Source: Callorhinchus milii (lineage: Eukaryota). Taken from it: 64,000 nt of DNA. The notes below the pieces were generated by a model. That model saw only the letters and a list, made by a program, of their open reading frames with translations. It searched no databases and was not told the DNA's origin. This document shows, one piece after another, positions 5,336-45,860 of the stretch. The position numbers were made by a program, and so were the translations under genes. The stretch is taken from positions 62,001-126,000 of the forward strand of contig NW_024704814.1 of NCBI RefSeq assembly GCF_018977255.1. Reading direction: 5' to 3'. The stretch's first letter is position 1; every line of letters begins with the position of its first letter.

Positions 5336-5464
5336 GAAGCATGGTCGAATAGGAAGGTCTTCAACCTCTAACTGAAATGGAGAAGGAAGTGGCAAGGCGT
5401 AGGGTTAGAGCAAGGGTGACAATGTTCCCACAGCAACTTTTGGTTGTCAGATTGTGTCACTAAC

Positions 5465-6975: not shown

Positions 6976-7014
6976 CATTCCAACTCTCTTGCTGGCACGA
7001 CTCTCCGAAAGCGT

Positions 7015-7305: not shown

Positions 7306-8221
7306 CCACTTTAAGGTACATTCCCACAAATATGCTTGGATTGAAATGATACTCACCGAAAGTAAGAAACAATGATTCCATTTCGAGGATGAGAAGAAGC
7401 TCGAGTCAAGTACAGAACCTGGAGGCTTGTGTTGGTGTCCGACGGGGAAGGATCTCTGCAGACTTAAATTAAACGGAGTAATTCTCAGGAGACGTTTTTG
7501 ACAGTGTCACCCTACTCTGTGATCACAAAACATCCGCTTCTCTGTCACACTGACATGGAAACTGTTGCGACACACAATGAGGAACAGTCTGACACACACA
7601 CACCCATACTGAGCTGTGATAGACACGCACAGAAACATATACACTCAGAGAGCAACCCGAACTTTGACGTATAGATGTATATTTAACGATGTTTAGAGAT
7701 GAAATCAGAGACTCAGACTCACGACATGTGATGTCCTTTACAGGAATTGTTGCAACACTTGCACACAAACCGTCAGTGTGAAGCTGATTCTCAGAAACTG
7801 CAGAATGCTATTTTAGTGCGTGAGTAACGCTCCGATTGAGAGCTGTGAACTGAGCTGGAAACCCAGTCCTGAGTATTTTGTAGAATGAAGAATTGGGTTC
7901 TTCCTGGTGTCCCATTGGAAACTTCTCCATTGCTGTGTGCACAATTCTGCGTGTTTGTGTTCCTCTGCAAATACATAGTCACAGCATGTTATATTGATTC
8001 CCGTGAAAAAACTATGGAAGGATTGCACGCAGAAATGAATCCTGGAGTCAAATGTAACAGTACATAGGTAGAAGAAACCACACATTTACGCTCTCAGTTT
8101 GGACTCTTTGTCGGATTACCTACTTCCACTTTTAAGTTGTTCACATTTTATCTTTTGTTGCGACATCCTTCTATCCTTCCCCGCAGTATTTCAGGGCATC
8201 GATTGCTGATTAATGCCCTGC

Positions 8222-8620
8222 GTAGATCAGCGTAGATTTATTGGGTTATTACCAGGGATGAAGGGGATGAGTTATGAGGATAGGATGACCAATTTGGGCC
8301 TTTATTCTCTAGAATATAGAAGAATTAGAAGGGATCGTATAGAATCTAATAAGATGATCAAAGGGCATGATAGAGTAGATAGGGGGAGATTTTTGTATGG
8401 AACTCACTACCCCAAAAGGCTGTTGACGCTCAGTTCTTGAACATATTCAAGACTGAGATGGATAGATTTCTTACTGCAAAAGTGATTTAAGGTTTATGCG
8501 GATAAGGCAGGGTCAGGTTATTAGCTGGAGTTAGATTAGAAGATCAGCCATGATTGAATGGCGGGGTAGGCTCGAAGGCCCTAATGGCCTTGCCCTGCTT
8601 CTACATGTTACGGTATGTCT
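8222..8620 (+). mobile_element. CR1-type LINE 3' end (mirror ~50555-51050, which is ~105 bp longer)
   Basis: MKGMSYEDRM..LGLYSLEYRR.RGD..KMIKG.DRVD..FF, and in the mirror TRGHFLK..RKNFF..VNVWNSLP..FKTEMDRFL; 3'UTR GATCAGCCATGATTGAATGGCGG..CTCGAAGG. Confidence 0.9.
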
Positions 8621-11600
8621 CCATCCATCTGATACTCTCAAAATATCTGTCACACACACATTGTTTCTCTCAGATTCTCAGTCTCCCTTCATCTGTGAAT
8701 CTCAAAGCTTCTGTAACACACAAACTGTGACTCTCGCACGCTCTCTGTCTCTCTCTCTCACAAACTCAAGCAGACTCTCCATCTACATCTCTCAAACTCT
8801 CACTCACACTCCCCATATTGTTCCTTCATACTACTAGTCTATCTTACAGACTTTCTCTCTCTATATATATATATACATATACAGATCAGATCAGTTTAAG
8901 GCGTATGCAAGGGTCAATATTGGATATTTTGTAAACGGCAAAAGCTGATGTGTAGCTGATCCACTGTCATGGTGTTAGCTTTGCAGTTTTGCCGGATATG
9001 AAGCACAAATCGCACAGCACCTCCCAGCAAAAAGTTCTCAAACATTTAACTGAAGAAGGAAAAAGCAAATAAACGGAACAACATAATTTCTTTAACGGTG
9101 TTTTGAATCAGTATTTCTCTGGACAGTAAACTAATCTGAAATCTCAAATCTGCCCTCCTGGCTGGTCTCACAGCTGCACAATTCACAATATTCGCTAAAT
9201 TGAGAGCTCTCAGCCCTGCTCTATTGACGGGTTTTTAGACCATTACAATTAGATAAGGCAGGCAGCCTTCACTCTGCAACACCTCGGTTGACCGTTTAGG
9301 GAGCCAATATTTCTGTTTTCCAAGGTGCAAATTTTATACAATATAAAACACAAATTACATAAGCATAGCGGCTTTCACTGCAGGAGTTCAGCTATTTGTG
9401 CAAATTAATGTAATTCATGTGAAATCTTATGGTCACATTGCTCACACTCTGTCTCTCTCACACACACTCTGTATCTCATAAACTCTCTCACACTCTGAAA
9501 CACTGTGCATCTCACATTCTCGGTGCCCCTATCTCCACCTGTGTCTCGCACACTCCCAGTCTTCCTCTATCTGTTTCGTTCAAACTCACTGTCACATACA
9601 CACTGTGTCATTCACAATTTCTTTCTCTAGCTCTCTCTCACTCGCAAACTCTTTAATTCGCTGTACCGTCTCTCTTCTGCCTATGTGTCTTTGGCACAAT
9701 CAGTCTCTCTCACAAATTGTGTGTTTCACAATCTTAGTCTCTCTCACTTTCTCTCTCCCTCCGACTGTCTATTTTAGGATCTAAGATGAGACGATAAATT
9801 CAGGTTCAGTTTGTGCTTTCTCGAAGACAAATATTAAAGGTACGGAGACGCCATTGGGAAAAGAGAAGTGTGTTTTTCCAAATGTTAGATTCCAGACCAG
9901 TCCAACTTAATCTGTAAGAAAGTGTTAATATTGGACATAGTGTCAAATGGCAAAGGCTGATGTGTAGCTGAAACACTTTCATGGTATTGGCTTAGCACCG
10001 TTACCGGATATAAAGCACAAACCACACAACACCTCCCTGCAAAAAGCGACTCAAATATTTAATTGTAAATGGAAAAAATCAACTGAAGAGAAAAGCAGAA
10101 TTTCTTTACCTGAGTTTGACTCTAAATTTCTCTGGGCCGTAAACACGCTTGGAATTTCAATAATGCTTTTCAATCATAATAATATTACTTGCATTTTATA
10201 TAGCGCTTCTTCAAGTCTTCGAGACGTGAAGAGGCATATTCAATATTTCAGACAAAATGTTATTCAGAATCAAAGCGCATTTCAGTCAGAGAACTAGAAG
10301 GTAGCACTTCAAATGCAAAATTTTAATCAGTAGAATACGCAAATCTAGTCATCAACTCTTTGCTTTCTACTCCACATCCATTGCCTCAGCAGGAAATTTT
10401 TTTTTCCACTTCCACCACATTTCTCGCCACAATCCATACCTCATATCCACAGCAGCCAAAACACTCATGCATGCCTTCGTAAATTCCCGGCTGGATTAAA
10501 TTCTGCTCTCTCGTCTCTGCAGCTCCAACATACACAAAATGCAATTAAAACAAAATTCGCTGCACGCTTTTGATCAGTTTTAATACGGAGAAAATCTACG
10601 ACTCAGACAGAGAAAATGAGAGATTTGGTCTGTGGCTCTGAGAAAAAACCTTCAAGTATATAGCGTGAAGCGAAAAGAGTTGCTCCAACTTTTCTTTGCT
10701 CACACTCTCAGTCTCTCCCACACACAAAGACTGTGACTCTCGCATTCTCTCGCACACTCTGAAAAACTGTGTCGCTCAAACTCTCAGTCCGTCTATCTCC
10801 GTATGTGTCTCTGAAATTCCCAGTCTCCCTCCATATGTTTCTCTCAAAGTCTGTATCACACACACACCTTGTCTCTCACACTCTCAGTCTCTCTCCAACT
10901 GTGTCTCTCAAGTTCTCTGTCAAACACAATGTGTCCCCCTGTCACTCGTCCAATCTCACTCTCCCTCTGTATCTCTCACACTACCACTCTCAATCTCCCC
11001 CTAAGCTTCTCTCACACTGTAAGCCTCTCGCAAACATAGTCGCTCTCGCTCTCACTCAAACTTACCGTCTGCTTATCATAGGCTTTGAAATGAGAGGTTC
11101 AACTGACCTTTATTCGTTTTGTGTTGAAGACAATTGTTAAGATCCCGAGACGTTTTCGGGAAGTGAGAAGGGAGTTTCTCCAATTGTTATATTCCAGAGC
11201 AACTCAATTTAAGTTGTACGAAAGGGTTAATATTGAACATGCTTTCAAATGGCAAAAGCTGATGCTTAGCTGAACCACTTTCATGGTGTTAGCTTAGAAG
11301 CTTCTCTCACACTCTGCCTCTCTCTCTCACACTATGAAAGCTCTCGCTCTCCTTTTGTGTCTCTGAAGCTCTCTCTCTCTCTTTCACTCTCTCTCTGAAT
11401 CTCTCACACTATCTTTGTCTCTTACGCCCGTTGCCTCTCACATTCTTAGTCTCTCTTTCCCTCTCTTTCTCGCTGTCGATCTAAGACGCAGTGATAAACT
11501 CAGCCCTAGTTTGTGCCGTGCTCAGGACAGACATTAAACATCCTGTGATGCTATTTGGGAAAAAGAAGGGATTTTCTCCTGGCATTAGAGTCCAGATCAG

Positions 11601-11850
11601 CTCAATATTGTAAATAGTATTAAACGGTAATGAGTGATATGTAGCTAAACTTTGTGATAGTGTCACCTCAACAGCATTACCGGATATAAAGCACAAACCA
11701 CACAACACCTCATGCGAAAAGGCTCAAACATTTAACTTTAAAAGTGAGAAAAACAGCTCAACTCAACAGCAGAATAAATGTAAAGGAGCGTTGTTTTTAC
11801 ATTTCTCTTGACAGAAACCCGCTTTAAGCTTCCAATTTGCTTTTTAACAA
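8620..11850. repeat. Degenerate macro-tandem array: four ~250-400-bp units separated by (CT/CA)-rich tracts (mirror ~47450-50550)
   Basis: GGCAAA(A/G)GCTGATG..TAGCTGA at ~8937, 9949 and 11251; GCACAAA.C.CAC..CACCTC at ~9003, 10014 and 11691. Confidence 0.75.
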
Positions 11851-12399
11851 TAATAGTTAAATTTGCTTTGGAAGTTCTGCCTTATCATGTCTTTTAGAAG
11901 TCTCAATGTGCTTCGCGTATTATACTGTAAAGTTAATTGACAGCATACTCTCATGGGCGCTAAATCAAATGCAAGGATTATTATTAATATTTCAAGATCA
12001 AATCGTATTGACACAGGAATTCACTGGGTGTTCAGAGTTTTTTTGACACTGTTTTATTTAGCAGATGATATAATTATTTGGTTCGTATTTATTATGGTTG
12101 TATGTAGTCCATTGTGATGTATGTACTATGCAATATCATGTTCCTCAATTGTAAAGTACTGTGGAAGTCACCCAAAGTGGAGTCCGCTATATAAACGCAA
12201 CTGGTTTTAGTTGTTTATGGAAATTAATAATAAAAATAATACAACAATAAAAATAGGAAGGAGAATATGAACTGATACAGCGCCTCCGCTCCAAACTGGG
12301 CACCGTATCAGTGCGTAATAATGGCGGTTACTAACTCCGAGCCGGGGGAATAATAACAATATTAAACACAATGTTAGTTGCTGTGTGTCACGTAAGTCA

Positions 12400-21250: not shown

Positions 21251-21959
21251 ACTGGGTACCAGGCGCAGCTCGCGGAAGCTACAGGACTCACACAGCATTA
21301 ATACTACACACACCATTAATACCCCACACATCCCATTAATAGCCCACACCCCATTAATACCCCACACACCGCAATAATACCCCACAGAGCCCATTAATAC
21401 CCCACAAAGCCCATAAATACCCCCCACAGTCCGTTATTACCCCACACAGACCAGTAATAGCCCACACACAATCAACACGCCACACACCCCAATAATATCC
21501 CAAACACGACAATAATCCACCACACAGTCCACTAATCCCCCACACAGTCCACTAATCCCCCACAAAGCCCAGTAATACCCCACAGCTTATTAACACCCCC
21601 CACAGCCCATTAGTACCCCCCACAGCTCATTAATACCCCTCACAGCCCATTAATATCCCCACACCGTCACTTAATAACCTACACAACTCATTAATACCCT
21701 AAATAGACAAATAGTACCCAGCACAGCTCATTAATGCCTCAAACACTCCATTAATATCCCACACCGAATGAATGCAACACTCAATCAACATACCTCTAGC
21801 AACCCATCAATACCCCACACACACCGTCAGTAACCCACACACCCATTAGTACCCCACACACCATTAGTACCCCACACACCATTCGTACCCCAAACACCAA
21901 TCTTATACCCCACACACCCATTTTACCCCTCACACCCATTGGTACCCCACACACATTAC

Positions 21960-22098
21960 TCTGACCCCGCCAACTCGCTCCCCATTGGTCCACCTCAAGC
22001 CCCTTGCCCCTTCAGCCACAGCCCTATTGGTGCGTCCGTCACAAACTGCACTGTGATTGGCCCTCCGTCAACGTCAATCATCTGCACTTCCGCCCCCT
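21960..22098 (-). promoter_or_regulatory. CCAAT x3 / GC-box / ETS-like module (paralog 37683-37817)
   Basis: ATTGG three times, CCCCGCC, ACTTCCGCCCC. Confidence 0.45.
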
Positions 22099-22864
22099 CT
22101 CTGTCCTCTCTCTCTCTCTCCCCACCGCACCGTCTCTCTCTCCTTCTCTCTCTCTCCCTCCCTCACCGTCTCTCTCTCCTTCTCTCTCTCTCTATCCCTC
22201 ACCGTCTCTCTCTCCTCACTCTCTCCCTCACCGTCTCTCTCTCCTTCTGTCCCTCTCTCTTTGTCCCTCACCGTGTCTCCCTCTCTGGGCCTCAACGTCT
22301 CTCCTCTCTCTCTCTCCCTCACCGTCTCTCTGCTTCTCTCTCTCTCTCTCTCTCTCTATCCCTCACCGTCTCTCTCTCCTTCTATCTCTCTCCCTGTCCC
22401 TCACCGTCTCTCTCTCCCTCACCGTCTCACTCTCCTTCTCTCTCTCACTCTCTCTGTCCCTCACCGTCTATCTCTCCTCTCTCTCTCTGTCCCTCACCGT
22501 CTCTCTCTGTCCCCTCACCGTCTCTCTCTCCTCTCTCTCTCTCTCTCCCTCACCGTCTCACTCTCCTCTCTCTCACTCTCTCCCTCAGCGTCTCACTCTC
22601 CTCTCTCTCACTCTGTCCCTCACCGTCTCTCTCTCCCTCACCGTCTCTCTCTCCTTCTCTCCCTCACCGTCTCACTCTCCTTTTCTCTCTCCTCACTCTC
22701 ACTGTCCCTCAGCGTCTGTCTCTCCTTCTCTCCCTCACCGTCTCACTCTCCTTTTCTCTCTCTCACTCTCTCTGTCCCTCACCGTCTCTCTCTCTCTCTC
22801 TGTCCCTCACCGTCTCTCTCACTCTCTGTCCCTCACCGACTCTCTCTCTCTCTGTCCCTTACCG

Positions 22865-22901
<37 letters not shown>

Positions 22902-23625
22902 GTGTCCTTCATCGTCTCTCTCATCTCTCTNNNNNNNNNNNNNNNNNNNNNNNNNNNNNNNNNNNNNNNNNNNNNNNNNNNNNNNNNNNNNNNNNNNNNN
23001 NNNNNNNNNNNNNNNNNNNNNNNNNNNNNNNNNNNNNNNNNNNNNNNNNNNNNNNNNNNNNNNNNNNNNNNNNNNNNNNNNNNNNNNNNNNNNNNNNNNN
23101 NCTCTCTCTCTATCCCTCCCTCACCGTCTCTNNNNNNNNNNNNNNNNNNNNNNNNNNNNNNNNNNNNNNNNNNNNNNNNNNNNNNNNNNNNNNNNNNNNN
23201 NNNNNNNNNNNNNNNNNNNNNNNNNNNNNNNNNNNNNNNNNNNNNNNNNNNNNNNNNNNNNNNNNNNNNNNNNNNNNNNNNNNNNNNNNNNNNNNNNNNN
23301 NNNNNNNNNNNNNNNNNNNNNNNNNNNNNNNNNNNNNNNNNNNNNNNNNNNNNNNNNNNNNNNNNNNNNNNNNNNNNNNNNNNNNNNNNNNNNNNNNNNN
23401 NNNNNNNNNNNNNNNNNNNNNNNNNNNNNNNNNNNNNNNNNNNNNNNNNNNNNNNNNNNNNNNNNNNNNNNNNNNNNNNNNNNNNNNNNNNNNNNNNNNN
23501 NNNNNNNNNNNNNNNNNNNNNNNNNNNNNNNNNNNNNNNNNNNNNNNNNNNNNNNNNNNNNNNNNNCTCTGTCCCTCACCGTCTCTCTCTCCTTCTCTCT
23601 GTGCCTCACTGTCTCTCTCTCTCTC
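22099..23625. repeat. (CT)n-rich minisatellite with CCCTCACCGTCTCT units and N runs (paralog 37818-39097)
   Basis: Directly visible; N runs at 22931-23101, 23132-23566 and 38775-38996. Confidence 0.95.
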
Positions 23626-23627
23626 TC

Positions 23628-23768
23628 CGTATCCGGAGCCGCCGCTGACGGCCGCCGCGCTCGTTGACGCAATGACGCAGGGCCGGGAGTCCCGCCCACG
23701 TGGTGACGTCGGCACGTACGGCGCCGTACGGCACCGCTCTCCGCCATGTTGTACGGCGCGGCTTCTGT
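23628..23768. promoter_or_regulatory. Small CpG-island promoter-like element (paralog 39098-39248)
   Basis: TGACGCAATGACGCA, CCCGCCC, CACGTG, TGACGTC, 16-bp palindrome CGTACGGCGCCGTACG (23715-23730) and YY1-like CCGCCATGTT. Confidence 0.6.
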
Positions 23769-23782
23769 ATTAACAACAGAAA

Positions 23783-24118
23783 CAATAATAATAATAATAA
23801 TCCTCGCATTTGATATAGCACTTTTCACGTCGGGAGGACGTCCCAAAGCGCTTCACAGAACACACTGTAGAATGAATTGACTGTATATTTGTGGGCGAAC
23901 GCGGAAGCCAATTGCGCACAGCAATGTCCCACAAACATTCGTGGGTTGGAAATGACCAATTCATTGTTGTTGTTTTTTTGGAGCGATTATTATTAGGCTC
24001 TATGTGGAGTAAGGAAACTTGCCCAAGGTTTGGCCCTGACCTGCCTATGATTGAACTCAGTTCTCTCACTTGCAAAGCGAGTGCTCTTACCACTGAGCTA
24101 CAGGACTACAGGACTCCA
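23783..24118 (-). mobile_element. Full-length tRNA-headed SINE (paralog ~39265-39598)
   Basis: Reverse complement has GTCCTGTAGCTCAGTGGTAAGAGCAC head, family body and (TTA)n tail. Confidence 0.92.
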
Positions 24119-25309: not shown

Positions 25310-25603
25310 TTGGGGTCCAGTTGCTCAGTGCTTAGAGCACTCGCCTTGCGAGCGAGATACCTGGGATCAATTCCAGGCAGAGCAAAGCCTCTGGCAAGTT
25401 TCCCTACTCCAGATATCTAATAATAATCCCTCCAGAACACGGCAATAATAAACTGGTCATTTTCAATCCACGACTGTCTGTGGGACACTGCTGTGCGCAA
25501 TTGGCTGCCGCGTTTCGCCCACAGAAATACGGTGAATATATTTTCACGTCCCAAAGACTTAAAAAACGCTGTGTCAAATGCAATGATGATTATTATTATT
25601 ATC
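25310..25603 (+). mobile_element. tRNA-headed SINE (paralog ~40667-40960)
   Basis: GGGGTCCAGTTGCTCAGTGCTTAGAGCAC head, family body and (ATT)n tail. Confidence 0.88.
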
Positions 25604-25900: not shown

Positions 25901-28900
25901 ATGTCTGAGAAAACCGAAGGGAGCGACATGGAGTGTGGAACTACTTCTGGGAAAGGTAAGTAATCGCCTCTGAATTTCTCTGTACCTTCGTCACTACTTA
26001 ATTTGCCGAAGATATTGTTGAAACAACACGTGTACTTTGATGCATTGGCTATTGACTTGTGAAATTAATTGGATTTACTGCATTGTTGTGTTTAATGTAT
26101 TAATAATATATAATGATATTTTATTATAATCCTCCAATTTGCTAATACGCCTCATCGCAGCAATAAGATATGTCAAAACGATGCACAGAATATATTGTAA
26201 AGTGCATTTGGTGTTTTATGGGTGAAGCACGGCAGCCAAATTGCGCAAAACAGTGAGCCAACACACCACAATGAAAAATTGGAAATCAATCTTCTTATGC
26301 CCTAACCATAAGGCTAACTTTGTAAGTTCATCAAATGAAGGGTTGCATTAGTTGGCTCAGATCAGCATTTAGTACAGAGGATAAATCAATCACTGCCACA
26401 TATCGCTTGTCAAAAGTTAAGTGACATCAATACACCAGAGAAGAAATTCAGTCTCAATCTTGGCAGAGGGGACGGAAACTTTTAATTTTTCTAGTCTCGG
26501 TTGGATCGATGCCAAACATCTTGAAGCTTTGATTTCTACATGTTGAATTATAGTGTTAATAAAATATAAATGTGTAATTATAGTCTTTATATTGAAAGTG
26601 CTCTGGCAATGATTATATCTTAACATTGTCTTTGACTATTGAAAACATCTTATTTTTTAAAAACTAATTCAACCAGTGACGTTATTTCTGTAATTTTTTC
26701 TGAAGATTTCATAATTAGTGCCTAAAAGTCCACTGTTTAAAATGTCTCAAATAGCAAACACAAGAGAGTTAAGATTTTTTTACGTGTGTGGTAAACAGAT
26801 AATCCCTCCAATATATAATAATAATAAATTGGTCATTTTAAATCCACGGTACTTTGTGGGACAGACGCTGCTGTGATCAATTGGCTGCCGCGTTTCGCGT
26901 ACAAATATACAGTCAATTCACGTTACAGTCTATTCTGTGAAGCGCTGCGAGATGTCGAGAAGACGTGAAAAGCGCTACATCAAATGCAATGATTATTATT
27001 GTTATTATTATTATTATAACCGCGTTCCTTCTTATAATTTACGTTATTGGAGGCCTACGTTTTCTACCCTCTCTCGTCCAACTCTGACCCTCGCACAACC
27101 ACGCCACCCCAAGGCTCGGGTCCTGAGCCCCGACTGTTCGGTGCCTTGGGACGTCCTCCTCACTTGAAAACCGCTTTGCAAATGTAATGCTCGTGTTCTT
27201 CTGTTTTAAAAAACATTTCTCTACAGGCGATCAAATCGCAAAGGGGTTCAGCTCCAAACGCAACCGAGTGAGCGGAGGAGAGGCCGGGAGCAGCAGATAC
27301 GGTTTGAGAAAGAGGCAGAGAAGAGATTGCACTGAGGAAAGGGATCTTCCTGCCGATGATTACCTGTGTGAGTGAAAAATCATTCTGAGTTTCTCAGCAT
27401 CAAATGCTCGAGTGCAGAATCGGGCAGATGGCAGCCGGGCTCAGTTGGTGTGCTCTTGGCTCCGAGTCAGAAGGTTGTGGCTTCGAGCGCCACATCGCGG
27501 GCAATGAGCTGACAGTCTGGGCTGACACTGCAGCACAGAGCTGGGGGGAGGGGGGGAGACGATGAACTGTCAGAGGTGCCGTCTCTCCCAGGTGCCCTGG
27601 TTTTCATGGAGCTCAGATGACAGGGCTGGGGAATGGCGACTCAGGTCAGCAACGGCAACCAAACGCTGTCAGCGGGGATGGTCAGCCTGTGCACTGCTGT
27701 GGGGGATGGGAAGGGCTATGAGGAATGAGGAGAGAGCAGTGCAGGGGTCAACATGGGGTTGGGAACACGGCTTTTAATTGGAAAGACAATGATGTCCGGA
27801 TTAAAGAGGTTTTGAGGGAGCGATAGGGATACAGAGGGGAAGGAGAGCCGTGAGAAGGGATAGGAAGGAGGTTGTGGAAAACGCTCATTGAAGATTTAGT
27901 CTGTGCGTTTGAAATATGAGGCCGCGAAGTGACATCACGCAGTGGATTTTGACCATTGGTTGGTTCAGGCGGGAAACGTCAAAATGGCTGCCTCCGTAGA
28001 GCCCCTCCCCCAACCCCCCCACCCCAATCCTGCCCACCACCCCGCGATGCACTGTCATACACCCCGAGCTTTTAAGCTAAAGTCACTCTGTGCCTCTCCA
28101 GACACATAGTAAAGATCCTTTAATGGTGTGGTGCAACACAGAGAAACTCGCTTCTCTTTTGGAAACATTACATGGGATCTTTACTGTCCACCTGAACAGA
28201 CATGGCCGAGGAGCTCATTATCACATTTCATCTGAAGCAATGCACCACCTACAATGGAAAGCATTTCCCGCATTAATATAAGTATCTCCATGTGTCCCAG
28301 ACTGTGGTCAACTACACTGATCACGGAGTCGCCTCACGGCTGTTTGTGGGTAGTTGCTGCCGTCAGAAACTGACACTGTCAATAAGTGATCAGCATGAAA
28401 AGCGGTATATAAATGTAAGCTGCTACTGACCGTACAGTTGGCAGTAAATTATGTAAATCATTGACATCATCAGGTGCTGTACAAATGCAAGGATTCAATC
28501 CAAATTTGCTCAAGAGCAATTCGTAAAGAAAGCTCATATATTGCTTATCCAGATCTTTCTTTTCTCCCATCAGCAGCCAAAGTGGATGATTCTGAGGCTC
28601 ATCCCTGGCCTCATGCCGGCGTTGTGTTGACTCGTGCCGAGTTCCTCCAGGAACACAGCAGAAGACATCCCGAGTTCCATAAAGACACATCAACAACGCA
28701 GACAGCTCGTAGCGCAAATGATGCTTTGCAGCAGAGAGAGTGTCAGGAATCTATTGTATTTCATGTTGAGGTAAACCGAGTCTCGCAAACAGGATCTCTA
28801 CAGGGTCAAAAGCTATCGAACACAGGAGATAGACTGTATAAATGTTCCAGATGTGGTGAGACTTTCATACATTCAGGGCACCTCAAGAGACACCAGCAAT

Positions 28901-29847
28901 CACACCGAGGAAAGCGTCTGTATAAGTGTCTGGAATATGGGAAGAGGTTCAAAATGTTGGGCAGTCTGAAGATACACCATCGATCCCACACAGAAGAGAG
29001 GCCATATAAAGGTGCTGACTGTGGAAAGAGTTTCACAACTTCAAGAGACCTCCAGAGAACCAAACAATCACACACAGGAGAGAAACCATATAAATGTGCA
29101 GAATGTGGAAAGAGTTTTGCAACGTCAACTTATCTCCAGAGACACCATCGATTTCATACAGGAGAGAGGCCACATGAATGTGTTCACTGTGGAAAGAGTT
29201 TTGCAACGTCAGGTTATCTCCAGATACACCATCGGTATCACACAGGAGAGAGGCCATATGAATGTGTTGAATGTGGAAAACGTTGCACAACTTCAAGTCA
29301 CCTCCATATACACCAACAAACACACACAGGACAGAGACGGTATAAATGTGCAGAATGTGGAGTGAGTTTCAGAGCATCAGGATCGCTCAAAATACACCAT
29401 CGATCACACACTGGAGAGAGACCGTATAAATGTGCTGAGTGTGGAAAGAGTTTCATTGCTTCCGGATCGCTCAAAATACACCATCGATCACACACTGGAG
29501 AGAGACCATATAAATGTGCTGAGTGTGGAAAGAGATTTTCAAACTCGAGTTATCTCCAGATACACCATCGATCACACACAGGAGAGAGGCCATACAAATG
29601 TGTACAATGTGGAAAGAGTTTCACAACTTCAGGAGACCTCCAGAGACACCGACAATCACACACAGGAGAGAAACCGTATAAATGTGCAGAATGTGGAAAG
29701 CGTTTCACAACATCAGGGGGTCTCCAGAGACACCAGCCATCACACATCGGAGAGAGACCATATAACTGTACTGAATGTGAAAAGAATTTTACGAGGAAAG
29801 ACCACCTCCAAAGTCACCGGCGGATACACACAGGAGAGACTGTATAA
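25901..29847 (+). CDS. PRDM9-derived SSXRD + C2H2 zinc-finger gene lacking PR/SET, copy 1: join(25901..25955,27227..27367,28574..29847), 489 aa
   Basis: All junctions are GT-AG and phase 1 (AAAG|GTAAG, TACAG|GC, CTGT|GTGAGT, CATCAG|CA); total 1470 nt open. Exon 2 encodes RYGLRKRQRRDCTEERDLPADDYL. Exon 3 starts AKVDDSEAHPWPHAGVVLTRAEFLQEHSRRH, then 12 C2H2 repeats (10 with all Zn ligands). The ATG choice is inferred; the exon probably begins at acceptor 25678. Confidence 0.72.
26795..27020 (+). mobile_element. SINE, 5'-truncated (paralog ~42262-42475)
   Basis: Family body and (TTA)n tail. Confidence 0.82.
27227..27367 (+). CDS. SSXRD-like exon (PRDM9/SSX repression-domain motif), copy 1
   Basis: 141-bp phase 1-1 exon ending ...DDYL|; resembles recalled human PRDM9 [23 protein letters not shown]. 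Confidence 0.78.
27425..27590 (+). mobile_element. 5' part of a second, older tRNA-headed SINE family (paralog ~43055-43230); related 3' parts at ~28090-28430
   Basis: GGCTCAGTTGG..CTCTTGGCTCCGAGTCAGAAGGTTGTGGCTTCGAG head, then GGCTGACACTGCAG..CTGTCAGAGGTGCCGTCT. Confidence 0.65.
27915..27996 (+). promoter_or_regulatory. Intronic promoter-like motif cluster upstream of the ZF exon (paralog ~43556-43636)
   Basis: TGACATCA, CCATTGGTT, GGCGGGAAA (E2F-like) and CAAAATGGCTGCC (YY1-like) within 80 bp. Confidence 0.45.
28574..29847 (+). CDS. Terminal C2H2 zinc-finger array exon, copy 1
   Basis: Within ORF 28474..29847: tandem YKCxECGKSFxxxxxLxxHxRxH-TGE(R/K)P repeats; strong acceptor CTTTCTTTTCTCCCATCAG. 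Confidence 0.93.
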
Positions 29848-31235: not shown

Positions 31236-31702
31236 AATAACAACTGTTTGAATGTGTACGGTGGGGGCCGCTTGTGTGGGATTGGGGCTGTGTCGATCTG
31301 TATGGTGCTGGGGGGGGGGGCGGCAATGTGTGTGCCCGGCCAACCCCACAGGCCCATGGTGGTCCCTGATGTGAGCCCTGGGGGGTGGGGGAGCGCAGAG
31401 GGTTGTATTTTTTTGTTGTTGCGCGCACATACTCCTGAAACGAAAATATGACATCAGCGGTTCCCCCACCCCCCCTCTCCACCCCTCCCCACCCCCCCTC
31501 TCCCCCCTCTCCCCCACCCACACCCCCACCGTTCTGCCCCCCCCCCCCCCTCTCTGCCCCTTTCCAACTCCCGGCTCCCCCCCCTCTCCAACCCCTCTCA
31601 CCCCCTCTCTCCCCCACATCTCCACCACTCCCCTACTCTCCCCCATCCCTCCCCGCGCTGTCCTGCCGTCGCTCCGCAGCTCGTAGCCAAACTGTACCCT
31701 CT

Positions 31703-32190
31703 CAGCAGAGAGAGTGTCCGGGATCTATCACTGATGCTGTTGGAGAAAAGGGGTTCACACGATCTATGCAGAGTCACCAGCAATCGATCTCAGGAGAGAA
31801 ACTCTGTAAATGTTCCCAATGTGGGAAGAGTTTCAAACGTTCGGGGACCCTCCACCTTCACCCGAGAATACACACAGGAGAGAAACTGCATAAACATAAC
31901 GAATGTGGGAAGAGTTTTTTTCATTCAGGGGATCTCCACAAACACCAGCGGATACACACAGGAGAGAAATCGTATTAATCTAATGAATGTGGGAAGTTTT
32001 ACAGTGTCAGGAATACTCCGAAAACAACAGCGAATACACACAGGAGAGAAATCTTATAACTTTTCCCAATGTGGGTAGAGTTTCCCACGTTCATGGATCC
32101 TCCACAGTCACCAGCGGATACACACCGGGGGAGAAACCGTATAAATGTGCGGAATGTGGGAAGAGTTTTGCGAACTGCCAACATTACGAA
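31703..32190 (+). pseudogene. Third, decayed C2H2 zinc-finger paralog (~5 fingers with stops and frameshifts)
   Basis: QQRECPGSI.. matches QQRECQESI of copies 1/2; [23 protein letters not shown]; TAA at 31976-31978. The 3' flank 32190-32620 is homologous to 29870-30290. Confidence 0.85.
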
Positions 32191-32425
32191 ACACCACAAA
32201 TTGCTTTGAAAGACGCTGTTCCTGTGGGAAAGTTTTCCAGGACCCGGTGCTGTTCGCAGCTCCACATGAGAAGCTGCTGTGAGAAGTGAAGGAAATAGCT
32301 AGTGTTTGATGTGCAGCGGAGTTCCACTCGATCCAACACCAGCGACTCACAGTGAAGACACCAGTGCGGCAGTTTGTCCCCTTCTCTCCTGACCACGTGT
32401 TGGGGGACCACAATATCCTGCCGGT

Positions 32426-36363: not shown

Positions 36364-38175
36364 CCAAGGCCTTGACAGCATTCCTAACGTGTGGTGCCCA
36401 GAAATGAACGCAGTGAGTCCTCGCGCTGAAGCCTCATCGGTGTTTTATACACATCATAACCTCCTTAATTTCGTCTCCTGGACGATAGACATTGGAGTCC
36501 TGCGGTTCGGTGGACAGAGCGCTCGCCGTGCGAGCGAGACGTCTGGTTCGTACCCGGTCAGGCAAAACCGGTGGCGAGTTTCCTTACTCCAGACACGCGA
36601 TAATAATCCCTATAGAGGGGCAAAACAAACAAATATAAATTGGTCACTTCAACCCACGGCTGCTTGTGCGACGCTGCTGTGCACCATCGGCTGCCGCGTA
36701 TCACCAACAAATATACAGTCACTTCACTTTACGATGTATTCCGTGAAGCGCTTTGGGACGTCTGTGAGTCACAATGAGGCACTGTATCAAATGGAAGTAT
36801 TACTACTATTGCACTGGGTACCAGGCGCAGCTCGCGGAAGCTACAGGACTGACCAAGCATTAATACTACACACACCATTAATACCCCACACATCCCCTTA
36901 ATAGCCCACACCCCATTAATACCCAACACACCTCATTAATATCCCACAGTGCCCGTTAATACCCCACAAAGCCCATAAATACCCCACACAGTCCGTTATT
37001 ACCCCACACAGACCAGTAATAGCCCACACACAATCAACACCCCACACACACCAATAATATCCCATACACGACAGTAATCTACCACATAGTCCACTAATCC
37101 CCCACACAGTCCATTAATCCCCCACAAAGCCCAGTAGTACCCCAGCAGCCTAGTCATATCCCCCACAGCCCAGTAATACACTCCACAGCTCATTAGTACC
37201 CCCCACAGCCCATTAATACAACTCAAAGCCCATTAATATCCCCATAGCCCATTAATACCCCCCACAGCCCACTAATATCCCACACCGCGCCTTAATAATC
37301 TACACAACTCATTAATACCCTGAACAGACAATTAGTACCCAGCACAGCTCATTAATACCTCAAACACTCCATTAATACCCCACACCGCATGAATACAACA
37401 CGCAATCAATACCTCTAGCAACCCATCAATACCCCACACACACCGTCAGTAAAGCATACACCCATTAGTACCCCACACACCATTAGTACCCCACACACCA
37501 TTAGTACCCCAAACACCATTAGTACCCCACACACCATTAGTACCCCACACACCCATTAGGACCCCACACCCATTTTACCCCTCACACCATTTTACCCCAC
37601 ACCTACTGGTATTGCACAAACCCATTGGTACCCTCACACCCATTGGTAACCCTCACACCCATTAATACCCCACACACATTGCTCTGACCCCGCCCACTCG
37701 CTCCCCATTGGTCCACCTCAAGCCCCGCCCCTTCAGCCACAGCCCTATTGGTGCGTCCGTCACAAACTGCACTGTGATTGGCCCTCCGTCCCCGTCAATC
37801 ATCTGCACTTCCGCCCCATCTCTCTGTCCTTCTCTCTCTCCTTCTCTCTTTCCCTCCCTCACCGTCTCTCTCTCCTTCTCTCTCTCTTCCTCCCTCAACG
37901 TCTCTCTCTCTTCCTCCCTCACCGTCTCTCTCTCCTTCTCTCTCTCTCTCTATCCCTCACCGTTTCTCTCTACTTTCTCTCTCTCTCCCTCCATCACCGT
38001 CTCTCTCTCCTTCTCTCTCCTTCTCTCTCTCTCTCTCTATCACCCACCGTCTCTCTCTCCTCTCCCTCTCCGTCTCTCTCTCCTTATCTCCCTCTCTCTT
38101 TGTTCCTCACCGTCTCTTTCTGTCTGTGCCTCAACATCTCTCCTCTATCTCTCTCCCTCACCGTCTCTGTCTCCT

Positions 38176-38206
<31 letters not shown>

Positions 38207-41200
38207 CTCAACGTCTCTCTCTCCTTCTCTCTCTCTCTCTGTCCCTCACCGTCTCTCTCTCTCTGTCACTTACCGTCTCTCTCTCCTCTCTCTCTCTCCC
38301 TCACCGTCTCACTCTCTTTCTCTCTCTCACCGTCTCACTCTCCTTCTCTCACTCTCTCTGTCCCTCACCGTCTCTCTCTCCTCTCTCTCTCCCTCACCGT
38401 CTCTCTCACCTTCTCTCTCTCTCACTCTCTCTGTCCCTCACCGTCTCTCTCTCCTTCTCTCCCTCACCGTCTCACCCTCCTTCTCTCTCTCACTCTCTCT
38501 GTCCCTCACCGTCTCTCTCTCTCTCTCTCTGTCCCTCACCGTCTCTCTCACTTTCTCTCTGTCCCTCACCGACTCTCTCTCTCTCTGTCCCTGACCGTCT
38601 CTCTCTCTCTCTCTCTCCCTCACCGTCTCACTCTCTCTCTGTGTGTGTCCCTCACCGTCACTGTCTCTCCTTCTCCCTCTCTCTCACTCACTGTCTCTCT
38701 CTCTTTTTATCAATCTCTCCCGCCCTCAGTGTCTCTCTCTCCTTCTCTCTCTCTCTCTCCCTCCCTCACGGTTTNNNNNNNNNNNNNNNNNNNNNNNNNN
38801 NNNNNNNNNNNNNNNNNNNNNNNNNNNNNNNNNNNNNNNNNNNNNNNNNNNNNNNNNNNNNNNNNNNNNNNNNNNNNNNNNNNNNNNNNNNNNNNNNNNN
38901 NNNNNNNNNNNNNNNNNNNNNNNNNNNNNNNNNNNNNNNNNNNNNNNNNNNNNNNNNNNNNNNNNNNNNNNNNNNNNNNNNNNNNNNNNNNNNNNNTCTC
39001 TCTCCCACACCGTCTATCTCTTCTTCTCTCTCTGTCCCTCACCGTCTTTCTCTCCTTCTCTCTCACTCTCTCTGTCCCTCACGGTATCTCTCTCTCTCCG
39101 TATCCGGAGCCGCCGCTGACGGCCGCCGCGTGCGAAGACGCAATGACGCAGGGCCGGGAGTCCCACCCGCGCGGTGACGTCGGCATGTACGGCGCCGTAC
39201 GGCACCGCTCTCCGCTGGGGGCCGCCATGTTGTACGGCGCGGCTTCTGCAATAACAACAACAGCAACAATAATAATAATAATCCTCGCATTTTATATAGC
39301 GCTTTTCACGTCGGGAGGACGTCCCAAAGCGCTTCACAGAACACACTGTAGAATGAATTGATTGTATATTTGTGGGCGAACGCAGCAGTCAATTGCGCAC
39401 AGCAATGTCCCACAAACATTCGTGTGTTGGAAATGACCAATTCATTTTTGTTTGGGTTTTTTTTTTGGAGGGATTATTATTAGGCTCTGTGTGGAGTAAG
39501 GAAACTTGCCCAAGGTTTGGCCCTGACCTGCCTGGGATTGAACTCCGGTCTCTCACTTGCAAAGCGAGTGCTCTAACCACTGAGCTACAGGACTCCACAA
39601 GTTCTGGTTGGGGGGAGGGGGGCAGTGAACCCTACCCTCTGGAGACCTTTAATGCGCCTTTACACTTGAGCAAATTGCGTCTTTTCAACAACCGCCACCT
39701 CCACGCAGTCTAGCGTCTCAGAGCGCTTCAGCGTGGTGGAGTTTGACCGGCCCGGGGAGGGCGGGAGGTGACACGGTCGGAAGGGAAGATTTTCAGGCAG
39801 GACGTGAAAAGGGGGAAAGGGGTCAATGCGGGAAGATTGCGGGAGAGAGTTCAGGATTTTCGTGGGTCAGTGGCTGAAAGGGCGACCGCCAATGATGGAG
39901 CGGATGGGGGGAGGGACAAGGTGGAGGCCGGTGCCAGACGAGCGGAGGCGCCGAGTGGTGGATTGGGGAGTGAGGAGATCAGGGGGCGGAGTGGTCGGAG
40001 AGGGGGACATTAACGGCACATTAAAGAGAGGGACTTTTAATGCGCAGTTTCAATAGGTGCAAATCGTATCTATTCAACTGCACAGTAAACAAAGGGCCAT
40101 TTAATGTGCGGTTTAATTTGTTGTAAATTGTAGGTATTGAACGCCACATTAAACAAAGGCCCCAGGAGTTGGCCGGCAGTAACCTGACCCTCTCCTCCTG
40201 GGCTGGACAGCTTCGCTCATACCTGAGAGGGAATTGAAATATCTCGTGACATGAATGGAAAAGACAAGTGAGTTTCTCTCTCGCGGGTCCTGACTGACAG
40301 TCCTCCACATTAATCCCCTCGGCGGAGGGGAGGGGGAAATCTATCTGTGGTGGTGGGGTGTGGGGTGGGAAATTAAGCAGCTCAGAGCCTGCAATGGGCG
40401 TCTTCAATAGGTGCAAATGGTATCTGATACATTTAGTGCTGAGATGTGTTGCCCACCTGGAAAACCGCAGGGAATTCCTTGTACCCACCGCCTACATAGT
40501 GAGGCTCAATCCCGCGCTTGTCGGACGCAGAACGTCCATCTGGTGACTGTGCTCCTCGGGGACGGCGATCGGGGCGTAAAACTAAACACTGGTTTACAAA
40601 ATGCAACTTGTGTTTAAGGATATCAGACATTCGGTCCCGCAGTTACAGGAGAATATCCTTCAGATTTTGGGGTCCTGTGGCTCAGTGGTTAGAGCACAAG
40701 CTTTGCGAGCGAGACACCTGGGATCAATTCCAGGCAGAGCAAACCCTCGGGCAAGTTTCCCTACTCCACACGTCTAATAATAATCCCTCCAGAACAAAAG
40801 AATAATAAATTGGTCATTTTCAATCCACGACTGTCTGTGGGACACTGCTGTGCGCAATTGGCTGCCGCGTTTCGCCCACAGATATACGGTGAATATATTT
40901 TCAGATCCCACAGACTTAAAAAGCGCTGAATCAAATACAATGATAATTATTGTTATTATCACCCAGACTGCTGATGATTCAGATATTTTATTCCATTTCT
41001 CTGCCTTTCTCTCCTCTCCCCCTCCCTTTCGCAGTATCCAATTCTCACCCTATTGAAATACCCAGAAGTGGACAAAAGCTGTGAATTTGGCTCAATCACA
41101 TGAAGACGACATTGGCTTTGAAAACTGCCAGAAAACCAACTGCTATACTATCAGCCAATTACCTTTAAACGTGAAGGGAATACGGCTGTATTATTGGCTT

Positions 41201-41256: not shown

Positions 41257-44200
41257 ATGTCTGAGAAAACCGAAGGGAGCGACATGGAGTGTGGATCGAC
41301 CTCTGGGAAAGGTAAGTAATCGCCTCTCAATTTCTCGGTACCTTCGTCACTACTTTATTTGCTGAAGATATTGTTGAAACAACACGTTTACTTTGATGCA
41401 TTGGCTATTGACTTGTGAAATGAAGTTGGATTTTTACTGCACTGTTGAATTTAATGTATTAATAATATATAGTGATATTTCATTATAATCCTCCAATTTG
41501 CTAATGCGCCTCATCACAGCAATTAGATATCTCAAAACGCTGCACAGAATATATTGTAAAATGCATTTGGTGTTTTGTGGGTGAAACGCCTAAGATGCAG
41601 AGTGCAGTTAGTTTTTTTTCATTAGAAACGTCTTTCTCAGGGATTTCGGTTTTATTTAATGACATTTCTGAAAACATGATTTGTACTCATTTACGTGTAA
41701 GTAGTCTGTGAGGAAGGTCTGAATGATGCCTTTCCTTTTGATTGTGCTCTGAGACGCTATCCTGCACGGAGGGCGCTATATAAGTGCAAGTTGTAGTGTT
41801 CGGTTTGAATCCAGGTGGATTAGTACAGAGGATACATCAATCACTACCACTACCACATATCGCTTGTCAATAGTTAAGTGACATCAATACACCAGAGAAG
41901 AAATTCAGTCTCAATCTTGGCAGAGGGGACGGAAACTTTTCATTTTTCTAGTCTCGGTTGGATCGATGCCAAACACCTTGAAGCTTTGATTTCTACATGC
42001 TGAATTACAGAGTTAATAAAATATAAATATGTAATTATAGTCTTTATTAGCACATTGAACGTGCTCTGGCAATGATTATATCTTAACATTGTCTTTGACT
42101 TTTGAAAACATCTTATGTTTTGAAAACTAATTCAACCAGTAACGTACTTTCTGTAATTTTTTCTGAATATTTCATAATTAGTGCCTAAAAATCCACTGTT
42201 TAAAATGTCTCAAACAGCAAACACAAGTGAGTTAAGATTTTTTTTACGTGTGTGGTAAACAGATAATCCCTCCAATATAAAATAATAATAAATTGGTCAT
42301 TTTAAACCCACGACTGTTTGTGAGACAGACACTGCTGTGATCAATTGGCTGCCGCGTTTCGCCCTCAAATATACAGACAATTCACTTTACAGTCGATTCT
42401 GAGAAGCACTTTGAGATGTCAAGAAGACGTGAAAACCACTATATCAAATACAATGATTATGATTATTTTTATTATAAGCGCGTTCCTACTTATAATTTAG
42501 GTAATCGGAGGCCTGTGGTATAAATAATAATATTAATATTAATTCTTACATTTGATATAGCGCTTCTCACGTCGGGAGGACGTCCCAAAGCGCTTCATAG
42601 AACAAACTGAAAAGTGAATTGACTGTATATTTGTGGGCGAACGCGGCAGCCAATTGCGCACTGCAATGTCCCACAATCAGTCGTAGATTGAAAATAACGA
42701 ATTTATGATTGTTTCTGGTTTTTGGAGGGATTATTATGAGGCTCTTTGTGGAGTAAGGAAACGTGCCCAAGGTACCTTGGGACGTCCTCCTCAGTTGAAA
42801 ACCGCTTTGCAAATGTAATGTTCGTGTGCTTCTGTTTTAAATAACATTTCTCTACAGCAGATCAAATCGCAAATGGGTTCAGCTCCAAACGCAACCGAGT
42901 GAGCGGAGGAGAGTACGGGAGCAGCAGATACGATTTGAGAAAGAGGGATAGAAGGGATTACACTGAGGAAAGGGATCTTCCAGACGATGATTACCTGTGT
43001 GAGTGAAAAATCAATCTGAGTTTCTCAGCATCAAATGCTCGAGTGCAGAATCGGGCAGATGGCAGCCGGGCTCAGTTGGTGTGCTCTTTGCTCCGAGTCA
43101 GAAGTTTGTGGGTTTGAGCCCCACATCGCGGGCAACGAGTTGACAGTCTGGGCTGACACTGCAGTACAGAGCTGGAGTGGGGGGTGGGGGGGTGGGTAGC
43201 GACGCACTGTCAGATGTGCCGTCTCTCCCCGGTGACCTGGTTTTAATGGAGCTCAGTTGACAGGGCTGGGGAATGGCAACTCAGGTCAGGAACGGCAACC
43301 AAGCGCTGTCAGCAGAGATGGTCAGCCTTTCCACTGCTGTGGGGGATGGGAAGGGCTATGGGGACTGAGGAGAGAGCAGTGCAGGTGGTCAATATGGGGT
43401 TGGGAACACGGCACTTAATTGGAAAAACAATGAAATCCAGATTAAAGAGGTTTTGAGGAAGCGATAGGGATACAGATGGGAAGGAGACCCGTGAGAAGGG
43501 ATAGGAAGGCGATTGAGGAAAATGCTCATTGAAGATTTAGTCTGTGCGTTTGAAATATGAGGCCGCGAAGTGACATCACGCAGTGGATTTTGACCATTGG
43601 TTGGTTCAGGCGGGAAACGTCAAAATGGCATCCTCCGTAGAGCCCCGCACCCTAATCCTGCCCATCACCGCGCGATGCACTGTCATACACCCCGAGCTTT
43701 TAAGCTAAAGTCACTCTGCGCCTCTCCAGACACATAGTAAAGATCCTTTAATGGTGTGGTGGAACACAGAGAAACTCGCTTCTCTTTTGGAAACATGTCA
43801 TGGGATCTTTACTGTCCACCTGAACAGACATGGCCGGGAGCTCATTATAACATTTCATCTGAAGCACAGCACCTCCTACAATGGAAAGCATTTCCCGCAT
43901 TAATATAAGTATCTCCCTGTGTCCCAGACCGTGGTCAACTACACTAATCACGGAGACGCCTCACGGCTGTTTGTGGGTAGTTGTTGCCATCATAAACTGA
44001 CACTGTCAATAAGTGACCAGCATGAAGGGCGGTATATAAATGTAAGCTGCTACTGACCGTACAGTTCGCAGTAAATAATGTAAATCATTGACATCACCAG
44101 GTGCTGTACAAATGCAAGGATTCAATCGAAATTTGCTCCTGAGCAATTCGTACAGAAAGCCCATATATTGCTTATCCAGATCTTTCTTTTCTCCCATCAG

Positions 44201-45860
44201 CAGCCAAAGTAGGTGATTCTGAGTCTCATCCCTGGCCTCATGCCAACGTTGTGTTGAGTTGTGCCGAGTTCCTCCAGGAACACAACAGAAGACATCCCGA
44301 GTTCCATAAAGACACATCAACAACGCAGACTGCTTGTAGCGCAAATGATGCTTTGCAGCAGAGAGAGTGTCAGGAATCTATCGTATTTCATGTTGAAGAA
44401 AACCGAGTCTCGCAAACAGGATCTCTACAGGGTCACAAGCAATCGATCTCAGGAGATAGACTGTATAAATGTTCCCGATGTGGTGAGAATTTCATACATT
44501 CAGGGCACCTCAAGATACACCAGCAATCACTCCGAGAAAAGCGTCTGTATAAATGTGTGGAATGTGGGAAGAGTTTCACAGGATCGGACAGTCTGCAGAT
44601 ACACCATCGATCACACACAGGAGAGAGGCCATATAAATGTGCAGTATGTGGAAAGCGTTTTGCAACGTTAGCTTATCTCCAGATACACTATCGGTATCAC
44701 ACAGGAGAGAGGCCATATGAATGTGTTCAGTGTGGAAAGAGTTTTACACAATCAGGAGAACTCCAGAGACACCAGCAATCACACACAGGAGAGAAACCGT
44801 ATAAATGTGCTGAATGTGGAAAGAGTTTCACAAGGTCGTGTTATCTCCAGGTTCACCATCGATCACACACAGGAGAGAAACCATATGAATGTGCAGAATG
44901 TGGAAAGAGTTTCAGAGCAACAGGATCGCTCAAAATACACCATCGTGTGGAAAGAGTTTCACTGCTTCAGGATCTCTCAAAATGCACCATCGATCACACA
45001 CTGGAGAGAGACCATATAAATGTGCTGAGTGTGGAAAGAGTTTTTTATCCTCGAGTAAACTCCAGGGACATCATCGATCACACACAGGAGAGAAACCATA
45101 TAAATGTGCAGAATGTGGAAAGAGTTTCAGAGCATCAGGATCGCTCAAAATACACCATCGATCACACACTGGAGAGAGACCGTATAAATGTGCTGAGTGT
45201 GGAAAGAGTTTTTTAACCTCGAGTAATCTCCAGGGACATCATCGATCACACACAGGAGAGAGGCCACACAAATGTGTTCAATGTGGAAAGCGTTTCACAA
45301 CGTTGCCTTATCTCCAGATACACCGACAGTCACACACAGGAGAGAAACCGTATAAATGTGCAGAATGTGGAAAGTATTTCACAACGTCAGGTTATCTCCA
45401 GAGACACCGACAATCACACACAGGAGAGAAACCTTATAAATGTGTTCAATGTGGAAAGCGTTTCACAACGTCAGGGAATCTCCAGACACACCAGCGATCA
45501 CACACAGGAGAGAAACCGTATAAATGTGCAGAATGTGGAAAGTGTTTCACAAGGGCAGACAGTCTCCAGAGACACCAGCGATCACACACCGGGAAAAGGC
45601 CACACAAATGTGTTGAATGTTGAAAGAGTTTCACAAAGTCAGGAGACCTCCAGGGACACCGACAATCACACACGGGAGAGAAACCGTAAAGATGTGTTGA
45701 ATGTGGAAAGAGTTTTAAAAGGCCAAGTTATCTCCAGAGACACCAGCGATCATACAGCGGAAACAACCATATAACTCTACTGAATGTGAAAATATTTTCA
45801 AGGAAATAGCACCTCCAAACTCACCAGCAGATACACACAGGAGAGACTGTATAATTATGC
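41257..45860 (+). pseudogene. PRDM9-derived SSXRD + ZF gene lacking PR/SET, copy 2, disrupted: exons 41257..41311, 42858..42998, 44201..~45860
   Basis: Exon 2 encodes RYDLRKRDRRDYTEERDLPDDDYL. About 17 finger units; ~37-bp deletion at ~44945 shifts the frame (stop at 45216), TGA at 45621-45623 and TAA at ~45687. Confidence 0.82.
42530..42773 (-). mobile_element. SINE present only in duplication copy B, tail-to-tail with the SINE at 42262-42475
   Basis: Reverse-complement family tail/body; absent at the corresponding position ~27055-27140 in copy A. Confidence 0.85.

Follow-up and report, generated by a model that had tools for sequence, protein, structure and literature searches.

The 64,000-nucleotide window of Callorhinchus milii analysed here (contig NW_024704814.1, positions 62,001 to 126,000) contains a C2H2 zinc-finger gene, referred to below as copy 1, in which a short exon carrying an SSXRD-like motif is spliced to a terminal finger-array exon. 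A related gene, copy 2, lies about 15.4 kb downstream. As read from the sequence, copy 1 consists of three exons on the + strand, with phase 1 at both introns. The coding part of exon 1 (25901..25955, 55 bp) comprises 18 codons plus one base and is followed by GTAAGT; its start ATG at 25901 is preceded by an in-frame TGA at 25874, 27 bases upstream. After intron 1 (25956..27226, GT..AG) comes exon 2 (27227..27367), which is flanked by AG on its 5' side and GTGAGT on its 3' side, contains 46 whole codons (27229-27366) and corresponds to a 62-amino-acid open reading frame (ORF) at 27187..27375. Intron 2 (27368..28573, GT..AG), in which no coding exon was detected, is followed by exon 3 (28574..29847), which encodes a linker and the finger array, ends with a TAA stop at 29845-29847 and sits within a 457-amino-acid ORF (28474..29847). 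TCAG stands directly before 28574, and another AG occurs three bases on. The original prediction of a 141-bp exon 2, in phase 1 on each side and with the translation given there, is borne out by the sequence and by the 62-amino-acid ORF. The same is true of the open three-exon frame of 489 amino acids, since the exon lengths (55+141+1274) sum to 1470 bases, or 489 codons plus the stop, between canonical splice sites.

Contigs from four runs (X1 to X4), belonging to two studies of one organism, were used to look for splice joints. The joint between exons 1 and 2 (25953>27225, GT..AG, cut at +2 and the same as 25955/27227) was found in X1, X2 and X3. The joint between exons 2 and 3, predicted at 27367^28574, was recovered at exactly this place (27367>28574, GT..AG) in one of the four runs, X1, on a single contig with a depth of 6 and a shorter side of 43 letters. 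No other partner of exon 2 appeared among the joints listed. X4 contained a non-canonical joint (27303>28577, TT..AG, side of 30), which we attribute to a paralogue or to chimeric assembly. At a loose end at 28583, X2 showed a different exon-2 ending, ...PEDDYL, fused to exon-3-like sequence, and a second member of the family therefore seems to be spliced in the same way. The 5' untranslated region of copy 1 extends upstream to at least 25801, as X2 and X3 contigs beginning at 25801 and 25843 reach 25953 and then continue at 27225; an upstream coding exon was ruled out by these contigs passing through and by the in-frame stop 27 bases 5' of the ATG. Two points have to be set against this evidence: none of the runs is recorded as RNA, nor is their tissue recorded, and the support for the joint between exons 2 and 3 is one low-depth contig. 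The contigs show that the copy 1 gene is expressed, and they support its model and its splicing.

The three exons were searched separately. Exon 3 matched the Pfam families zf-C2H2 (E 1.9e-58, 12 stretches) and zf-H2C2_2 (E 8.1e-76). The finger array (28837..29844, + strand) is made of 12 units of 28 residues; when a regular expression was applied in this register, ten of them matched C-x2-C-x12-H-x3/4-H, while units 2 and 3 lacked the full set of zinc ligands. The 12 C2H2 fingers announced by the original prediction are hence present as units and as Pfam stretches, with ten canonical and two degenerate. With its tandem fingers and TGEKP-type linkers, copy 1 falls within the C2H2 (Krueppel-type) class. 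A protein search with the whole of exon 3 returned generic zinc-finger proteins alone (8000 scored, best 120), apart from P0007, and a word-index protein search with the part preceding the fingers gave 14 candidates, none of them at E<=0.001. P0007 is a catfish PRDM9 homologue: over its N-terminal part it aligned to PR/SET structures of human PRDM9 with an E-value of 8.7e-69.

Between the start of exon 3 and the array, inspection revealed a degenerate finger devoid of cysteines (HPWPHAGVVLTRAEFLQEHSRRH, 28600..28668, + strand), which keeps the register of a classical C2H2 unit and the classical H-x3-H spacing. This segment had been proposed to be the finger that follows the SET domain in PRDM9. 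The human post-SET finger string quoted for that proposal agrees with PDB 4ijd_A and, by eye, shares E.HP.P and FL..H..R with the cysteine-less segment at equal spacing. However, when the 65 residues at the start of exon 3 were compared with P0007 by BLASTP, the segment aligned to ordinary fingers of the array (best E 0.38) in preference to the post-SET finger of P0007. Together with the generic-finger register and the H-x3-H spacing, this led us to reject the post-SET identity of 28600-28668. Because the segment aligns to ordinary fingers, the claim that the gene retains the sequences on either side of the SET module is not established. A decayed first finger is common in zinc-finger genes of this kind, and the cysteine-less segment is best read as one; it is no evidence that the far SET flank survives.

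PRDM9 proteins have the order KRAB, SSXRD, zinc knuckle, PR/SET, single finger and C2H2 array. Neither SET nor KRAB was found in exon 3 among the best 25 of 38 Pfam families, and a tblastn search for SET exons in the 64-kb window with the first 330 residues of P0007 gave a best E-value of 3.2. The two introns contain 33 open segments on the + strand that are at least 30 amino acids long; Pfam scans of ten of these (the six longest of 17 in intron 2 and four of 16 in intron 1) gave neither KRAB nor SET. Hidden SET or KRAB exons within the introns were rejected on the grounds of the P0007 and segment searches. As for KRAB elsewhere, exon 1 codes for just 18 residues after the in-frame stop, and Pfam detected no such domain in exon 2 or in the C. 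milii relatives described below. Copy 1 has neither the PR/SET domain nor the KRAB-related N-terminus that define the PRDM family, and exon 2 is joined directly to exon 3. The reported lack of PR/SET and KRAB is therefore confirmed for the gene, for the intron segments scanned and for the window. Since the PR/SET domain is missing, the protein would not methylate histones by itself.

This architecture could in principle result from a clean deletion, in which a PRDM9 duplicate lost its knuckle and PR/SET exons, kept both flanks and came to act at PRDM9 sites as a competitor or adaptor without methyltransferase. The succession of SSXRD-like exon, degenerate finger, linker and array is that of PRDM9 minus SET, the resemblance of the degenerate finger to the human post-SET finger fits as well, and exon loss between the introns would keep the frame because both introns are in phase 1. 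We nevertheless consider this scenario improbable: the cysteine-less finger has a generic register with H-x3-H and aligns to ordinary P0007 fingers, the searches of the introns and of the 64 kb revealed neither KRAB nor knuckle nor SET, and the N-terminus of the C. milii relatives is longer by about 85 residues, which are unlike PRDM9.

A profile built from the two exon-2 peptides of the window was searched against 1.84 billion representative proteins and gave three matches at E<=0.001. P0001 (LOC103185808) and P0002 (LOC103190347) are 'uncharacterized' C. milii proteins, and P0003 comes from a short Logan contig, where its ORF reads through the exon into apparent intron flanks. Two cluster mates, P0004 (C. 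milii XP_007910549, LOC103191364) and P0005 (JGI), were added, and none of these five proteins is PRDM9. When these relatives were compared with the window by tblastn, they matched the two exon-2 copies alone, with 52.5-72.5% identity in nine of ten alignments; the other was a longer gapped alignment of P0005 at 34% identity. The alignment of the seven members (A3) contains 15 invariant columns, of which 13 fall in the last 26 residues (RY.LR.R.R...TEE..L...DYL). This conserved core is represented in copy 1 by the SSXRD-like basic-acidic motif (SSRYGLRKRQRRDCTEERDLPADDYL, 27289..27366, + strand). A regular expression for the motif recovered P0001 to P0005 alone from 125 proteins, plus a spurious DDYF in P0021, and when the motif region of P0004 served as query in a word-index search, P0001 was the one candidate. 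Metagenome scans with A3 and with P0005 led to no confirmed locus.

The C. milii loci are similar to copy 1 in the motif exon, which is 59-63% identical in A3 and 59.6-72.5% identical in tblastn against both copies. They differ from it by a stretch of about 85 additional residues that separates the start from the motif and bears no likeness to PRDM9, and by their visible isoforms, which are short (116-243 amino acids) and show no fingers. P0004 illustrates this arrangement: it starts with MECGTTIGK, sharing MECGTT.GK with exon 1 of the window, continues with the extra residues and the motif, and ends in ...DDDYLYRC. In residues 131-138 of this protein, Y-R-C follows DDDYL and precedes the stop, and where the zinc knuckle of human PRDM9 begins, the sequence is DDDYL-Y-C. 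The Y-R-C end of P0004 could be a relic of the knuckle exon or a product of chance.

Exon 2 had been presented as an SSXRD exon, and likeness to this domain was found at a sub-threshold level. PF09514 (SSXRD) was the sole family of the 24,736-model Pfam library to be matched by any of the seven exon-2 peptides. The match was obtained with one of them, P0005, at 14.8 bits (E 0.023) for a stretch of 43 residues and 13.5 bits (E 0.057) for the whole ORF, and spans positions 4-23 of the 31 in the profile. Taken as a blind search, it corresponds to a probability of about 0.16 after seven tries and is not significant; for a single model named beforehand, each sequence has a nominal probability of about 1e-6. 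The composition of the motif agrees with that of SSX, in which a basic region RLRERK (R167, R169, R171) is followed by an acidic C-terminal DPEEDDE, as described by McBride et al. (PMC7714695). On inspection of A3 against these two elements, the family was seen to have the basic LR.R core and, C-terminal to it, an acidic stretch. The 15 residues of L168-P183 in SSX appear to have their equivalent in L26-P41 of exon 2, at the same spacing.

Its C-terminal end is similar to PRDM9. DDDYL closes the motif of copy 2 and of the C. milii members (DDDYLY in P0004), and in human PRDM9 the residues EPQDDDYL precede the zinc knuckle (PDB 4ijd_A). With hhalign, the ddDYL of the family was placed on HEDYL 78-82 of P0007, directly before its knuckle, with a non-significant E-value of 0.32. 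The original prediction also quoted a 23-residue string for the PRDM9 SSXRD, of which the last eight residues alone were confirmed in PDB 4ijd_A; if the rest of the string is right, ungapped identities counted by eye amount to 11 of 23 for copy 2 and 9 of 23 for copy 1. When the motif was aligned by eye on the shared L-R, the family had S/G/E and G/D/S at the places of W164 and R167, so that both SSX residues are missing. According to PMC7714695, SSX needs both residues for nucleosome binding, and PRDM7/9 peptides, which also lack W164 and R167, failed to bind nucleosomes. Without equivalents of these two residues, the exon-2 motif looks PRDM9-type rather than SSX-type.

A number of results weigh against the presence of an SSXRD. 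The profile check failed for the window itself, as both exon-2 copies matched no Pfam family at E<=10, and no SSXRD was found in P0001-P0003 or P0004, leaving six of the seven family peptides without a match. The score of P0005 is 8 bits short of the curated Pfam cut-off for SSXRD, set at 23 bits, and no family member attains this value. Weak SSXRD scores can moreover be inflated because the motif is compositionally biased, with R/K followed by D/E. No PRDM9 or SSX protein was among the three matches in the 1.84 billion proteins or in the PDB profile searches (one irrelevant match with A1, E 0.89, and none with A3), and Atlas searches with P0004 and exon 2 gave no usable match. Finally, two motif positions of copy 1 do not follow the family consensus, with C for Y and A for D. 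On the other hand, Baker et al. (PMC5519329) mention that the SSXRDs of PRDM9 from a shark, eels and salmon were weakly predicted, with e-values above 10, and they report no SSXRD in the C. milii PRDM9 models. Because those shark, eel and salmon domains score weakly, a true SSXRD from outside the tetrapods might also do so.

These negative results would be expected if the genes formed an ordinary lineage-specific zinc-finger family, in which RKRQRR serves nuclear localisation, an acidic stretch comes after it and the resemblance to PRDM9/SSX is due to chance or convergence. The absence of a Pfam match in the window copies and in six of seven peptides, the lack of PRDM9 or SSX in the protein, PDB and Atlas searches, the shortness and biased composition of the motif and the hhalign E-value of 0.32 against the PRDM9 homologue all agree with such an explanation. 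We regard it as unlikely, though it has to be taken seriously, for four reasons: the single match among the Pfam models fell on the very family named beforehand; the DDDYL(Y) end is as in PRDM9 before the knuckle; the motif has its own exon, directly 5' of the finger exon; and Y.LR.R, TEE and D.DYL are invariant in the family, which exceeds the needs of a localisation signal. On balance, homology of the motif to SSXRD appears somewhat more probable than its absence, judging from the sequences compared. The proposed SSXRD exon is retained in this sense, on the P0005 score and the DDDYL end, while exon 2 of either window copy matches nothing in Pfam at E<=10.

Copy 2, also on the + strand, has the same organization. 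In its exon 1 (41257..41311), 17 of 18 residues are the same as in copy 1 (tblastn and sequence), and its exon 2 (42858..42998, 141 bp) shares 40 of 46 residues with that of copy 1. These two exons are intact, and the motif in copy 2, which keeps Y and DDD, follows the family consensus more closely than does its counterpart in copy 1, the intact gene. Three-frame translation of exon 3 (44201..45854) revealed a frame break near 44945, after six fingers, and in-frame stops at 45621-45623 and 45687-45689; two ORFs (44251..45216 and 44889..45623) lie in this region. The second copy is thus not intact in this assembly, in contrast to what the original prediction implied. From the frame break and the two stops, copy 2 is a probable pseudogene in the present assembly, and taken as a whole it is probably either a pseudogene or the source of a truncated product. 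No third exon-2 copy was found in the window by tblastn.

Between the two copies, introns and exons alike are about 90% identical, and the arrays, which align out of register, are 77-86% identical. Exon 2 differs by six non-synonymous and two synonymous codons, so that no constraint is visible at the scale of the two copies, which is a point against the reading favoured below. It could be argued that copy 1 is transcribed but functionless, as a member of a birth-and-death cluster that is becoming a pseudogene like copy 2. The broken frame of copy 2, the two fingers of copy 1 that lack ligands, its two motif departures from the consensus, and exons no more alike than introns would all be in keeping with decay. 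Yet copy 1 has kept an open frame of 489 codons over three exons with canonical splice sites and gives spliced contigs in two studies, and a divergence of about 10% is too small for constraint to be judged. We find loss of function in copy 1 very improbable, more so than the clean deletion of SET exons considered above.

Several other features of the window accompany the two genes. A third, decayed zinc-finger remnant (31448-32200) has stops between its fingers and no exon-2-like sequence nearby, and is weakly similar to the linker preceding the fingers in exon 3 (42% over 52 residues). Intron 1 of copy 1 contains a very high-copy repeat at about 26760-27033, with a summed contig depth of up to about 90,000 in X1. 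Two matches to the tRNA model at the Rfam threshold, at 24036-24107 (- strand) and 25314-25385 (+ strand), lie 5' of exon 1 and are probably the heads of tRNA-derived short interspersed elements. In intron 2, a promoter-like block (27900-28010), recognised by eye from a CCAAT-like motif, TGACATCA and AAAATGGC, is kept in copy 2 at about 43540-43640; the bins covering 27582-28129 had zero depth in all four runs. Long CT-rich low-complexity tracts at 21939-23850 and 37708-39360, with Ser/Leu/Pro ORFs in several frames and masked N runs (22931-23101, 23132-23566 and 38775-38996), are found upstream of each gene copy and form part of the duplicated unit. The zinc-finger cluster is bracketed by the arms of an inverted duplication (1445-12322 and 46977-57828), which consists of twelve collinear arm pairs that are 95-100% complementary over about 11 kb a side, with inner ends about 34.7 kb apart. 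A 30-N gap (46532-46561) is located just inside the right arm. The arms may reflect a true segmental duplication of palindrome-like form or may be an artefact of the assembly.

Taken together, these results lead us to favour, at slightly better than even confidence, a lineage-specific C2H2 zinc-finger gene family that carries a divergent effector motif of the PRDM9 SSXRD type. Descent from a PRDM9 duplicate is plausible, although we would stop short of calling it probable. The SET-less PRDM9 offshoot initially put forward is upheld as to its gene model, its lack of SET and KRAB and its SSXRD-like motif, whereas the presence of both SET flanks and the PRDM9 descent are unproven. The product of copy 1 would be a nuclear protein that binds DNA sequence-specifically through its 12-unit array. 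In its N-terminus of roughly 65 residues, the basic-then-acidic motif, encoded by its own phase-1 exon and spliced to the finger exon, is the sole conserved element. This motif may act as a short effector module for interactions, through which the protein, once bound to DNA, would contact chromatin or partner proteins, either by PRDM9-like partner binding or by nucleosome contact, and its basic cluster could serve also as a localisation signal. The protein itself is predicted to have no enzymatic activity. With respect to repression, two studies indicate that most of the repression potential of SSX has been assigned to its SSXRD (PMC8835667) and that the KRAB-SSXRD-PR/SET segment of PRDM9 gave no repression in reporter assays (PMC6923878). 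Because the latter segment was inactive in reporters, repression is not implied for the motif of copy 1.

Copy 1 resembles PRDM9 in having a short basic-acidic motif related to DDDYL-ending sequences, which occupies a separate exon 5' of the terminal exon with the finger array, and in the variation of its tandem fingers from one paralogue to another. It differs from PRDM9 by the lack of PR/SET, knuckle and KRAB and by a motif that scores under the Pfam SSXRD cut-off. In cnidarian PRDM9, according to a preprint (10.64898/2026.09.07.749791), the SSXRD and the finger array also occupy one exon each, as the motif and the array do in copy 1. The truncated cnidarian variants described there all lose ends and never the middle. 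The SSX family of mammals combines a KRAB-like N-terminus with a C-terminal SSXRD and has no fingers. Its resemblance to the window motif lies in the LR.R basic core followed at equal spacing by an acidic, proline-containing stretch (PMC7714695), and the differences lie in the missing fingers and the conserved KRAB-like domain of SSX, and in the absence of W164 and R167 equivalents from the window motif. KRAB and aKRAB zinc-finger genes, as presented in PMC8835667, likewise join a C2H2 array to an N-terminal module for which an origin from PRDM9 has been suggested, without SET and in tandem clusters. They keep KRAB and lack SSXRD (the coelacanth aKRAB genes are said there to have neither SSXRD nor PR/SET), whereas the family of copy 1 would keep an SSXRD-like part and no KRAB.

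McBride et al. (PMC7714695) place SSX-like sequences in SSX and PRDM7/9 alone. The literature on SSXRD that was surveyed in part, from titles and the beginnings of abstracts and including work on Callorhinchus, describes no SSXRD-plus-finger gene without SET. Baker et al. (PMC5519329) built gene models just where a SET match existed, and SET-less offshoots would have been missed because this design required such a match. They further tie complete PRDM9, with KRAB and SSXRD, to rapidly evolving hotspots, and describe the role of SSXRD in PRDM9 as poorly understood. The family of copy 1 may be an undescribed spin-off of PRDM9. Our tentative proposal, which we hold as possible rather than probable, is that the SSXRD exon of the PRDM9 N-terminal region in cartilaginous fish was independently placed, alone, on a fast-changing array and gave rise to a SET-less and KRAB-less family, which multiplies in tandem and uses the motif as its effector.

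If the likeness to SSXRD is convergent, the genes would represent one more lineage-specific zinc-finger subfamily. If the proposal is true, they would provide a second case, beside SSX, of an SSXRD-type motif outside PRDM9, and an SSXRD-like motif combined with a finger array alone would be a minimal system for the role of this motif on DNA-bound proteins. The family would then also reveal a third route from PRDM9 parts to new gene families, and would be the counterpart in cartilaginous fish of SSX in mammals and of the KRAB zinc-finger genes in lobe-finned vertebrates.

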